Part shown: positions 13,638 to 28,074 of the stretch, one piece after another | Layout of the letters: each line of letters opens with the position of its first letter | Numbering within the stretch: position 1 is the first letter of the stretch | NCBI RefSeq assembly: GCF_001194135.2 | Contig: NC_068994.1 | Coordinates: 21,689,515 to 21,745,284 of the forward strand | DNA: 55,770 bases | DNA from: Octopus bimaculoides | Lineage: Eukaryota | Direction: 5' to 3' | Made by a program: the position numbers and the translations under genes | The notes under the pieces: model-generated | What the model saw: the letters and a program-made list of their open reading frames with translations, nothing else | The model's database searches: none | Told to the model about the DNA's origin: nothing

Positions 13638-13717
13638 ATGCCAACATCCTGTGCAGCATATAAATGTACACGTCGAAGTGACAGAAAAGCACGTGAGCAA
13701 GGCATCACATTTCACTG
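13638..13717 (+). CDS. THAP-BTB coding exon 1 (MPTSCAAYKCTRRSDRKAREQGITFH)
   Basis: Acceptor tttgcag at 13591-13597, ATG at 13638 with G at -3, CxxxxC of THAP, donor TG|gtcagt at 13718 (phase 2). Confidence 0.92.
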
Positions 13718-27000: not shown

Positions 27001-28074
27001 ACCACTTGTGAGTCAAATGTTGCTGTTGATACTGTCAATGAGACACTATCTTGGACTTGCTGCAGTGATACCAAATCTTCATCACCAAGTGTTCAGTCAA
27101 CACTTGGTGTAAAACTTTCAACTACTGAACCTCTCTCAACTTCCTCTTCCTGGATGCTGTCTCCTGAGAATCCTGTTCCTGTCTCTGACCAATTTGAAGA
27201 GAATCATTCACCATCTAGCTATCTACCATCTCTTACTACTGTCACTCAGCCTGGTGTTACAATGATGGATGTGAGTGCAGAGAATTCTGATACTAATCCA
27301 ATTGTTATCTCTAACCCAGATACTCAAACTGATGACATGAATTGCACCACCTCTGATCCAGATGTTTCTAATATTAATACAAGTGTTCCTGTCAGGGATT
27401 CAAATGCTGTAACAGGTGTTATTGATTCAACTGCTGCTGTGAATAATCTTGGTGTTGTTATCTCTGGTTTGGATGTGCCAGTCAGTGAAGCATCAAGTGT
27501 CACTATTACGAACTCTGGTGTCACTGTTACTGATCTAGGTGTTGTTATTAATAACCTCAACCTCCCAATCACTGATCTCTGTGTCCCAGTTACAGACTTA
27601 GGTATTGCTGTCACTCATGCAGATGTTACTGATCTTGGCACCTCAATTACTCATCCAGGTGTTATTGATCCATGTGACTCAATCAAAAACCTAAATTTCT
27701 CAGTTGCTAATTCATGTATTAATGTCACTGCTCCACATGTTACTGTTACTACTTCTAATGACAATGATGTCAATCAAGATTCCATTGTGACCAATCTCAC
27801 TGTTCCAGTTGTTGATGTCATCAATCCAGTTGATAATCCAACTGATCCAAGTGAAAATGTTACTGGATCAGAATCAAGTATTACTCATCAAGACGTTGGT
27901 GTCTCTGATCCTGATACAAATATCATCAATCCTAGCACCAGCATCACTAATTCAGGTACTAACATCACCAACCTACAGGTAAATGTATGTCATCCTGCTA
28001 CTGTTACCAATATGATTACAAATGATATTGATCTCGAAACTAATGTTGTTGATCCAGGTGCTGTTATTCACTAA
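13638..28074 (+). CDS. THAP-domain + BTB/POZ-domain protein, join(13638..13717,14557..14758,17355..17450,22154..22527,24544..24691,26728..28074), 748 aa
   Basis: Manual splicing: all introns are GT-AG and phases match (2,0,0,2,0). Total 2247 nt = 749 codons with no internal stop. THAP signature MPTSCAAYKC...FHCFP...W...LCSEHF...AVPSIF. BTB signature FCDAGI...VHKVVLLAMCP...DYMYNG...LKLLCD. Confidence 0.85.
14557..14758 (+). CDS. THAP-BTB coding exon 2 (THAP core)
   Basis: Pyrimidine tract + tttatag|T TTT CCT AAG. Encodes FPKDLKRRKEW...[37 protein letters not shown]. Donor |gtaagg. Confidence 0.95.
15330..15900 (-). mobile_element. Possible very decayed LINE RT fragment
   Basis: Weak resemblance to P..WK.A and K.FD.VWH..L..KL motifs. 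No intact motif. Confidence 0.25.
17355..17450 (+). CDS. THAP-BTB coding exon 3 (basic, NLS-like KKVSVSGQRRREK)
   Basis: ttttttgcag acceptor, 96 nt open phase 0-0, donor TTG|gtatgt. Confidence 0.75.
17770..17935 (+). mobile_element. SINE-like element with tandem aaaagcacc subunits and RTE-type tail
   Basis: Repeated gtaaaaaacacc/aaaagcactc/ataagcacc/ataaaacacc units followed by cactctgtaaagtggttgacattaggaag. Confidence 0.6.
18160..18660 (+). mobile_element. SINE-like element ending in (GAT)n with RTE-type tail
   Basis: ggcgttaggaaggacatccagc...ccaacccatgctagtatggaaagcagatgttaaatgatgatgat. Confidence 0.8.
19431..19650 (+). mobile_element. tRNA-derived SINE, full length
   Basis: ggcggtgagctggcagaatcg head, B-box ctgagttcaaattc, conserved body. 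Confidence 0.85.
20058..20212 (+). mobile_element. tRNA/CORE-type SINE head
   Basis: A-box-like ggctatgtggtgag, B-box-like ggttcagtccc, core-like ggcacttcagacaagtgtc, followed by (GT)/(TA)n. Confidence 0.8.
20250..20365 (-). mobile_element. RTE-tail SINE 3' end (antisense), runs into a gap
   Basis: catcatcatcgtttaacgtccgctttccatgctagcatgggttggacg is the reverse complement of the 18620-18660 tail. Confidence 0.85.
21405..21620 (+). mobile_element. SINE tail fragment
   Basis: tttgtccctcaccactgcttgacaactggtg...ccaagcatggtcacagtcaaatgattcaaac. Confidence 0.75.
22154..22527 (+). CDS. THAP-BTB coding exon 4 (S/T/N-rich linker)
   Basis: gttttcag acceptor, open frame matching ORF 22247..22579. Donor AG|gtttgt (phase 2) matches the phase-2 acceptor at 24544. 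Confidence 0.75.
22715..22935 (+). mobile_element. SINE-like element with aaaagcac subunits and RTE-type tail
   Basis: gtggttggcattaggaagggcatccagcc...gtccaacccatgccaac...attaaaagatgatgat. Confidence 0.8.
23640..23847 (-). mobile_element. tRNA-derived SINE (antisense copy of the 19431 family)
   Basis: ctgccagctcactgcc end and gaatttgagctcagaacg, reverse complement of the head and B-box. Confidence 0.85.
24159..24260. repeat. 31-bp minisatellite, about 3 copies
   Basis: Unit cactcacctacagtcctggtttccctctccc. Confidence 0.9.
24544..24691 (+). CDS. THAP-BTB coding exon 5 (BTB N-terminal part)
   Basis: tttgcag|T GAT GAT. Encodes YIVASHPRSMLHNLALLWKDGKFCDAGIGNENATIM. Donor ATG|gtaagt. Confidence 0.88.
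25430..26170 (+). mobile_element. RTE-type LINE RT C-terminal remnant
   Basis: Degenerate (Y)ADDL.FIAKSFEELQ...GLKIS, Cys-rich insert, then DSF.YLG-like and HVKGRLY...YGSE-like motifs. Confidence 0.65.
26728..28074 (+). CDS. THAP-BTB coding exon 6 (BTB C-terminal part + heptad-repeat tail)
   Basis: ttttcctag|GTT CAC AAG; 1.35-kb open frame VHKVVLLAMCP...; TAA at 28072. The 3' end is uncertain (see findings). Confidence 0.85.
   Translation, partial: VHKVVLLAMCPKLLSMPSADISSSQFLRVNFPKRISQLALDAFADYMYNGILDVDPQILTQLRTVAVCLEMEELKLLCDTHLSKLKSPRVPTTCESNVAVDTVNETLSWTCCSDTKSSSPSVQSTLGVKLSTTEPLSTSSSWMLSPENPVPVSDQFEENHSPSSYLPSLTTVTQPGVTMMDVSAENSDTNPIVISNPDTQTDDMNCTTSDPDVSNINTSVPVRDSNAVTGVIDSTAAVNNLGVVISGLDVPVSEASSVTITNSGVTVTDLGVVINNLNLPITDLCVPVTDLGIAVTHADVTDLGTSITHPGVIDPCDSIKNLNFSVANSCINVTAPHVTVTTSNDNDVNQDSIVTNLTVPVVDVINPVDNPTDPSENVTGSESSITHQDVGVSDPDTNIINPSTSITNSGTNITNLQVNVCHPATVTNMITNDIDLETNVVDPGAVIH

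Follow-up and report, generated by a model that had tools for sequence, protein, structure and literature searches.

An intact six-exon octopus gene encoding an N-terminal THAP zinc finger and an internal BTB domain, and its place in a cephalopod family of related architecture

The stretch of DNA analyzed here (termed the window) comprises 55,770 nucleotides of the Octopus bimaculoides genome (assembly GCF_001194135.2, contig NC_068994.1, positions 21,689,515 to 21,745,284 of the forward strand); it is 38.5% GC, contains seven gaps of N, and supplies the position numbers used below. On its forward strand lies the gene LOC106875079, which encodes, in one conserved frame, a protein of 748 residues in which a THAP zinc finger (residues 5-87) precedes an internal BTB domain (residues 281-384)--that is, an architecture in which the DNA-binding domain leads and the BTB lies inside the protein, as a first-pass annotation made from the letters of the sequence had proposed. 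The six-exon gene is real and intact. Sequence comparison makes it a member of an unnamed cephalopod family, whose proteins combine a DNA-binding domain with an internal BTB domain, and it is in this family-level pattern, rather than in the single locus, that the wider interest lies. The parts of the gene, and the features adjoining or interrupting them, are as follows.

13598-13633, + strand: short upstream open reading frame (ORF) of ATG, 10 codons and TAA, in the probable 5' untranslated region (UTR) part of exon 1
13638-13717, + strand: coding exon 1, with the start codon and residues 1-26, including C5 and C10; donor GT, ending in phase 2
14557-14758, + strand: coding exon 2, the remainder of the THAP domain (residues 27-94), with P29, W38, C60, H63, F64 and AVPSIF
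17355-17450, + strand: coding exon 3, a basic segment (residues 95-126)
17451-22153, + strand: intron 3, which holds a repeat block at 19920-21931
20366-20988, no strand: assembly gap of 623 N, inside the repeat block of intron 3
22154-22527, + strand: coding exon 4, a fast-evolving linker rich in S, T, N and K (residues 127-250), predicted to be disordered
24544-24691, + strand: coding exon 5, the pre-BTB segment and the N-terminal part of the BTB domain (beta1, alpha1 and the first strands; residues 251-300)
26728-28074, + strand: coding exon 6, the rest of the BTB domain (to 26979; residues 301-384), a 353-residue tail and the stop codon
28075-29554, + strand: probable 3' UTR, ~95% identical to O. 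vulgaris, its extent being set by conservation only

Direct reading and joining of the six exons, all on the + strand, shows that every internal border is AG/GT, that the phases are consistent, and that the joined sequence (2247 nucleotides) has no internal stop; the exon coordinates proposed by the first-pass annotation thus proved exact to the base. In O. vulgaris, for which a gap-free locus served as the comparison (L001, OX597827.1), all six exons have the same splice dinucleotides and lengths (apart from exon 6, which is 3 nucleotides longer), and their translation equals the annotated ortholog; the counterpart of exon 1, for instance, lies at L001 10001-10080, with equal length and donor. 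Upstream, 40 nucleotides before the start codon, an acceptor-like TTTGCAG directly precedes the ATG of the short upstream ORF, and the site, this ATG and its stop codon are all kept in O. vulgaris; an acceptor-like site before 13598 suggests that at least one non-coding, unannotated 5' exon lies farther upstream. At the other end, the ~95% identity of 28075-29554 to O. vulgaris compares with 84-92% in collinear intron and upstream blocks, and the region following the stop codon is probably a long conserved 3' UTR. A separate observation concerns the 36 nucleotides just before exon 5 (24508-24543), which are open and in frame and correspond to the 12 extra residues of an O. sinensis isoform (X1): the acceptor dinucleotide there is AA, not AG, both in the window and in O. 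vulgaris, and hence an X1-type isoform may not exist here.

The THAP domain is encoded by 13650-13717 together with 14557-14737, and matches the Pfam THAP profile (PF05485) from end to end (residues 5-87 against profile positions 1-87 of 87; 62.6 bits versus a cut-off of 23.9, E=6e-17). Judged by the zinc-ligand pattern C-X2-4-C-X35-53-C-X2-H, its C2CH signature is complete (C5-X4-C10-X49-C60-X2-H63), and it also has P29, W38, F64, P84 and AVPSIF (residues 82-87) as its version of the C-terminal AVPTIF box, positions that are invariant or nearly so in the THAP alignment; the earlier description of an intact THAP, with C2CH plus P, W, F and P, was therefore right in all of its signature residues. 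THAP domains derive from the P-element transposase. A search with the THAP domain alone as the query returned 20 candidates, the nearest named relatives being fish THAP6-, THAP2- and THAP1-like proteins (48-56% identity), none of which has a BTB domain; no THAP+BTB protein from outside the cephalopods was found among these 20, which consist of unnamed fragments and of fish or shark proteins with a THAP domain only, a sample that leaves room for such proteins elsewhere. After the THAP domain, the fish relatives carry the [DE]HxY HCF-1 motif and a helical region. A regular-expression search finds no [DE]HxY HCF-1-binding motif within the 748 residues, and the only helix following the THAP domain (residues 99-116) is a low-confidence one in a full-length AlphaFold2 (AF2) model based on a shallow alignment.

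The BTB domain matches the corresponding Pfam profile (PF00651) over residues 281-384, starting at 24632 (35.1 bits versus a cut-off of 20.5, E=1.7e-8, profile positions 4-108 of 110). An AF2 model of the BTB segment has a predicted local distance difference test score (pLDDT) of 91 and a predicted template modeling score of 0.82. When this model was compared with the PDB using Foldseek, 258 matches were obtained at E<=1e-3, and the 50 listed are all BTB domains, with template modeling scores of 0.7-0.85; the closest structures among the matches listed are the long-form dimeric BTBs of PATZ1, NS1-BP, KEAP1, KLHL26, ZBTB8A, PLZF and BCL6. The sequence alignment with PATZ1 begins at chain residue 22, in the YQVSKHSAEMLHNL region, which corresponds to the beta1/alpha1 extension; alpha1 and a short beta1 (E264-266) appear in the AF2 models, as predictions only. 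The modeled domain is that of a long-form BTB with the N-terminal extension found in swapped dimers. The M-S-E of KLHL3 (phi-x-E, in the alpha3-beta4 loop), a Cul3-contact motif in published Cul3-BTB structures, aligns to I-S-S, so that the Glu is lost. Pfam finds neither BACK/3-box, Kelch or MATH domains, nor a transposase domain, nor, at E<=1, C2H2 zinc fingers. At the start of the BTB domain the TTK motif (FxLRWN-type) is absent, the equivalent stretch being SMLHNLALLWKDGKF; this motif has been reported as arthropod-specific, with none in molluscs (PMC11426971).

Beyond THAP and BTB, no other Pfam family is found in the 748-residue protein at E<=1, and in the full-length AF2 model (10-sequence alignment, mean pLDDT of 36) these are the only two folded regions. 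The segments between and after them agree with what had been read from the sequence at first: exon 3 is indeed basic (10 K+R versus 1 D+E) and is probably a nuclear localization signal, to judge by its composition, while exon 4 does encode the S/T-rich linker. The 353-residue tail is acidic (42 D+E versus 4 K+R), rich in V, T, S, N, D and P, and contains loose [VI]-T-D-L-G-like motifs. In a published supplement from 2023 (PMC10027918) this tail bears the label 'Herpes outer envelope', which we reject as a low-complexity artifact, in view of its composition and of Pfam finding nothing there. Two further observations on the tail may be recorded: in the Argonauta hians ortholog (P0003) it exceeds 600 residues by way of two tandem peptide repeats, one SNPHSGLASTPIA-like and the other SHPNDPDLSV-like; and Octopus and Argonauta have in common a short block, SGVTVTDLGVVINNL(N/D)LPI, which may serve as a linear motif with a function.

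Comparison of O. bimaculoides with O. vulgaris by the Nei-Gojobori method yields ratios of non-synonymous to synonymous substitution rates (dN/dS) of 0.07 for the THAP domain, 0.28 for exon 3, 0.05 for the BTB domain and 0.17 for the tail; the values for THAP and BTB imply that both domains are under strong purifying selection. For the linker of exon 4 the ratio is ~1.9, from 15.5 non-synonymous versus 2.5 synonymous differences, a value not distinguishable from neutral; this exon could be under relaxed or positive selection, the counts being too small to tell. It is kept in O. vulgaris as 374 nucleotides with an open frame and both splice sites, is open as well in a third Octopus-like genome (P0041, 80% amino acid identity), and can be aligned in Argonauta.

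The assembly gap in intron 3 begins 2.9 kb past the donor of exon 3 and ends 1.2 kb ahead of the acceptor of exon 4; because it is wholly intronic, it has no bearing on the reading frame. On either side the window remains collinear with the O. vulgaris locus, in the same strand and order: 19109-19919 aligns with L001 14875-15700 and 21932-23182 with L001 15709-17002. Between them, the ~2 kb block 19920-21931, which consists of microsatellites and interspersed repeats, has no collinear O. vulgaris counterpart, its flanks being 8 bases apart there. The gap is adjoined by a ~120-bp repeat (20245-20365), of which there are at least four copies in the window (the others, on the - strand, are at 18548-18660, 22835-22936 and 30868-30953); since this repeat adjoins two gaps (those at 20366 and 30867), the gaps seem to be assembly breaks within it. 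Where exons 3 and 4 meet, the orthologous proteins contain no additional residues, and this, together with the collinear flanks, implies that the conserved gene lacks none of its exons here. An attempt to find a gap-free O. bimaculoides copy in GCA_001194135.2 failed: CM046614.1 at ~21.70 Mb equals the window base for base, including the same 623 N.

The product is identical at 748 of 748 residues to RefSeq XP_014778534.1, 'uncharacterized protein LOC106875079 [Octopus bimaculoides]', which is also UniProt A0A0L8GSG9, 'BTB domain-containing protein'. Full-length members of the same cluster, at 96% identity, are isoforms X1 and X2 of O. sinensis LOC115219085 (which differ only by 12 residues) and O. 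vulgaris CAI9733027.1; the Argonauta hians ortholog (1010 residues) has its domains in a like order, and in all three species the protein is again modeled as the product of a single gene. Moreover, the supplement of the 2023 survey lists the LOC106875079 protein as "THAP BTB", and according to the text of the survey the THAP and CENPB factors of Octopus are for the most part linked to BTB/POZ (PMC10027918). Given the single RefSeq gene and this listing, the annotation is unsplit and the architecture already on record; the gene is annotated and catalogued and its architecture is not new, and the concern that annotation might divide it into two genes did not materialize. Whether such proteins might be widespread and already characterized, as the first-pass annotation had also asked, has a divided answer: the protein is catalogued, but full-text literature searches turned up no functional study of it, and neither THAP-BTB nor BTB-THAP as a term. 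The survey itself lists proteins singly and labels the BTB 'transposon source', and its searched parts describe neither the logic of the loci considered next nor a shared BTB clade (PMC10027918). At the level of the locus, then, the outcome is mainly one of confirmation: the gene model is correct, the gap does it no harm, and both RefSeq and a published catalog already contain the gene.

The family was explored through an exhaustive HMMER search with residues 1-403, of which the best 150 of 2490 matches were considered. Some of these are THAP-only proteins and the others BTB proteins; those of the latter that bear a name all come from Octopus, Argonauta or Acanthosepion, the remainder being Logan or ENA contigs. 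As the named BTB relatives are all coleoid cephalopods, the architecture looks lineage-restricted. An earlier suggestion, that lineage-specific exon shuffling produced the gene, is upheld to this extent among the best 150 of 2490, but not as a one-off event, the gene being one of a family in which many kinds of N-terminal DNA-binding domain are followed by an internal BTB. In the BTB relatives scanned by Pfam the BTB domain lies in the middle, and most have a recognized DNA-binding domain ahead of it (several have no recognized N-terminal domain); the N-terminal domains occurring in the family are THAP, FLYWCH, CENP-B_N with HTH_Tnp_Tc5, Brinker, FAR1/ZSWIM3_N-like, STPR, CG-1 and DUF3504. In an alignment of 22 BTB sequences (that of the window and 21 other members), 13 columns are invariant and 15 nearly so, and the family matches reach E-values of 1e-17 to 1e-53, as against ~1e-6 for the best BTB in the PDB. 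A profile search of a word-indexed database with this family alignment returned 5 weak, mostly unnamed fragments and missed known members, so that it is uninformative on distribution outside the cephalopods. In a neighbor-joining tree (without bootstrap) the window gene groups with its orthologs from Octopus and Argonauta in a clade of their own; many of the paralogs lie on one chromosome-scale scaffold, and the window gene on a different one.

A paralogous locus, represented in two species, shows how this architecture is deployed. The isoforms of O. bimaculoides LOC106877732 (P0005-P0010) have an identical C-terminal part of 534-596 residues, including BTB and tail, and differ in an N-terminal part of 131-162 residues, which carries THAP, FLYWCH, CENP-B/Tc5 or another domain; in isoforms of O. 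sinensis LOC115209932 (P0011, P0013 and P0014), which likewise have their C-terminal part in common, the variable N-terminal part is 334-386 residues long, and DUF3504 is also among the domains carried across the two species. Like the window gene, both encode an N-terminal DNA-binding domain, a long linker, an internal BTB and a low-complexity tail. The closer paralogous BTBs are 46-53% identical to that of the window gene and share with it the invariant W27, C33, D34, H47 and P56, among others; some paralog isoforms also begin with a THAP domain (P0004 and P0005), to which the window THAP is only distantly related. Unlike LOC106877732, the window gene has one THAP, does not swap exons and is on another scaffold: tblastn with 40 proteins, including the paralog isoforms, revealed no alternative DNA-binding 5' exon, and indeed gave no match in the window other than to the six exons. 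One further protein of 976 residues (P0063) combines a THAP, a DDE_3 transposase domain and a family BTB, and may be either a transposon insertion that a gene model has absorbed or a true fusion.

Evidence from transcripts comes from a paralog. An RNA-seq contig (L002) contains a 777-residue reading frame running from THAP to BTB (P0029), and aligns to the genome of the cuttlefish Acanthosepion pharaonis in seven blocks over 46 kb, which implies that it is a spliced mRNA and that THAP and BTB occur in one transcript of this paralog; the exact protein is present on 11 contigs, and the five that were inspected derive from five different sequencing runs. In the one paralog checked, a cuttlefish junction within the BTB (P0016, residues 447/448) aligns with the exon 5/6 junction of the window gene, and this shared intron codon suggests that the BTB core was passed on through gene duplication. 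Logan contigs matching the window gene (P0002/L007-L010 and P0041/L012-L015) were considered as transcripts and set aside, inasmuch as they run through intron sequence: they are genomic and from another Octopus-like species.

The surroundings of the gene are rich in mobile sequence, some of which is recognizable by its coding remnants, as listed below.

31287-35196, + strand: degraded Helitron, with one ORF matching Helitron_like_N
35248-35712, + strand: fragment of the long interspersed nuclear element (LINE) type
41314-42118, - strand: a further LINE-type fragment, the two having weak endonuclease (Exo_endo_phos) and reverse-transcriptase (RVT_1) matches in broken ORFs
43739-44077, - strand: ORF grouped with the LINE fragments by position only, with no Pfam match

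By eye, another ORF of the Helitron is PIF1-helicase-like in its C-terminal part, and an upstream ORF of 123 residues has a cysteine-protease-like motif; from ~31.8 kb onward the element is orthologous in O. vulgaris (90-93% identity), where the copy gives a weak PIF1 call. Just upstream of exon 1, a segment of 4.7 kb (8405-13073), which includes a gap at 9049-9376, has no O. vulgaris counterpart and may represent a transposon that inserted in this lineage close to the promoter or 5' UTR; the 209-residue ORF that it contains (- strand, 10497-11126) has no Pfam match. Scans of the whole window found no Rfam families and no tRNAs.

We consider it likely that LOC106875079 encodes, as one gene and as an old, dispersed member of its family, a dimeric, THAP-targeted nuclear regulator of transcription or chromatin; from the domains and their order we infer its DNA binding, dimerization, localization and output. 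The N-terminal C2CH zinc finger would bind DNA sequence-specifically, and the short basic segment would direct the protein to the nucleus; after a disordered linker of ~125 residues, the internal long-form BTB would homodimerize, possibly also pairing with paralogous BTBs or with co-regulators. The BTB would thereby take on the dimerizing role that a coiled coil has in vertebrate THAP1-like proteins, and the resulting dimer, as a bivalent THAP DNA binder, would recruit or organize transcription or chromatin factors.

Certain observations weigh against this interpretation, and some of them bear upon the alternatives. The transcript of LOC106875079 itself was not found, exon 4 is shown to be coding by its open frame, length and splice sites only and not by constraint, and the orthologs of other species have been annotated by computation, perhaps not in full independence of one another; in addition, introns 2-5, among them the one with the assembly gap, are long (2.0-4.7 kb) and rich in repeats. 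These circumstances might be accommodated by supposing that gene predictors and the first-pass annotation alike fused a THAP gene (exons 1-3 or 1-4) with a separate BTB gene (exons 5-6). This we regard as very unlikely: O. vulgaris retains the phase and splice sites of each of the six exons, the same fused product is modeled in four species, the BTB of the family members examined comes after a long N-terminal stretch that includes a DNA-binding domain, and the spliced cuttlefish mRNA of a paralog carries both domains; moreover, no in-frame ATG precedes the BTB core in exon 5, which starts in phase 2, so that a BTB gene standing alone would require a further, unseen exon at its start. Still less credible, and indeed hardly to be entertained, is the notion of a transposon-borne or decaying locus--that is, a P-element-like THAP fragment lying beside a BTB pseudogene, without a function in the host. 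The origin of the THAP domain, the Helitron and LINE fragments around the locus and the lineage-specific insertion just upstream are what such a notion would draw upon; but there is no transposase domain by Pfam, the frame is intact, orthologous in Octopus and Argonauta, syntenic and single-copy, the dN/dS of both domains is 0.05-0.07, and the nearest THAP relatives are host THAP genes.

A functional alternative is that the BTB binds Cul3 and that the protein is a substrate adaptor, whose THAP domain or tail brings in a chromatin-bound substrate or tethers the ligase to DNA. BTB domains as a class serve as Cul3 adaptor modules, and the top structural matches among those listed include the BTBs of KEAP1, KLHL26, KLHL3, NS1-BP and SPOP; that the closest structures include Cul3 adaptors (KEAP1, KLHL) beside ZBTB factors counts among the points against the favored interpretation. 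Yet the ZBTB factors fit the fold equally well, and, as both kinds of protein match it, the fold alone cannot separate the two roles. Against the adaptor role stand the absence by Pfam of BACK/3-box, Kelch and MATH domains and the loss of the contact Glu, in place of which the paralogs checked by eye also have Ser; given these features an adaptor role is not favored, nor, with neither BACK nor Kelch and with Ser for Glu, is the Cul3 recruitment that the first reading had offered as an option, and we judge the adaptor explanation unlikely.

If the octopus protein is taken as a dimeric THAP-targeted regulator, several known systems invite comparison. In the mod(mdg4)/lola logic, one BTB is combined with many alternative DNA-binding modules, among them FLYWCH (PMC11426971). 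The octopus paralog locus LOC106877732 follows this logic with its variable modules as 5' exons, whereas fly mod(mdg4) and lola have an N-terminal BTB and variable modules encoded by 3' exons, some of them joined by trans-splicing; unlike the Tramtrack group, moreover, the octopus protein lacks the TTK motif, and the window gene is not multi-isoform. Coleoids thus appear to place transposon-derived DNA-binding domains before one type of BTB, mirroring the arthropods' placement of such modules behind theirs. Tentatively, and as a possibility that we hold to be less than probable, the family may be a coleoid counterpart of Tramtrack, lola and mod(mdg4), independent in origin and opposite in polarity, in which one BTB and many transposon-derived DNA-binding domains, brought together through 5' exons and duplication, would form a heteromerizing network with the window gene as one of its nodes. 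If this is true, and dimerization does extend across paralogs, combinatorial BTB regulators would have been invented independently in a lineage whose families of regulatory genes are known to be expanded.

For the protein itself, the closest parallels lie elsewhere. The ZBTB/POK factors (PATZ1, PLZF, BCL6, ZBTB8A) provide the best matches in both sequence and structure, having, like the octopus protein, a long-form BTB with the beta1/alpha1 extension, and both combine a BTB with a sequence-specific DNA-binding module (in the octopus protein a predicted one) without BACK or Kelch; in the octopus protein, however, the order is reversed, with THAP first, the BTB at residues 281-384 of 748, and no C2H2 fingers. 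With vertebrate THAP1-, THAP2- and THAP6-like proteins it shares an N-terminal THAP with all signature residues, but THAP1-like proteins are ~200 residues long and continue with [DE]HxY and a helical region, where the octopus protein has instead a BTB and a long acidic tail. The BTB-BACK-Kelch adaptors (KEAP1, KLHL3, NS1-BP) have a very similar BTB fold, from which the octopus protein departs in having no BACK/3-box or Kelch and a Ser at the position of the Cul3-contact Glu. Finally, the catalytic domain that follows the THAP in transposases of the P-element/THAP9 type is not found in the octopus protein by Pfam. On these comparisons, the octopus protein would work in the manner of a ZBTB factor or of a THAP1-type dimeric DNA binder, while being a member of neither family.

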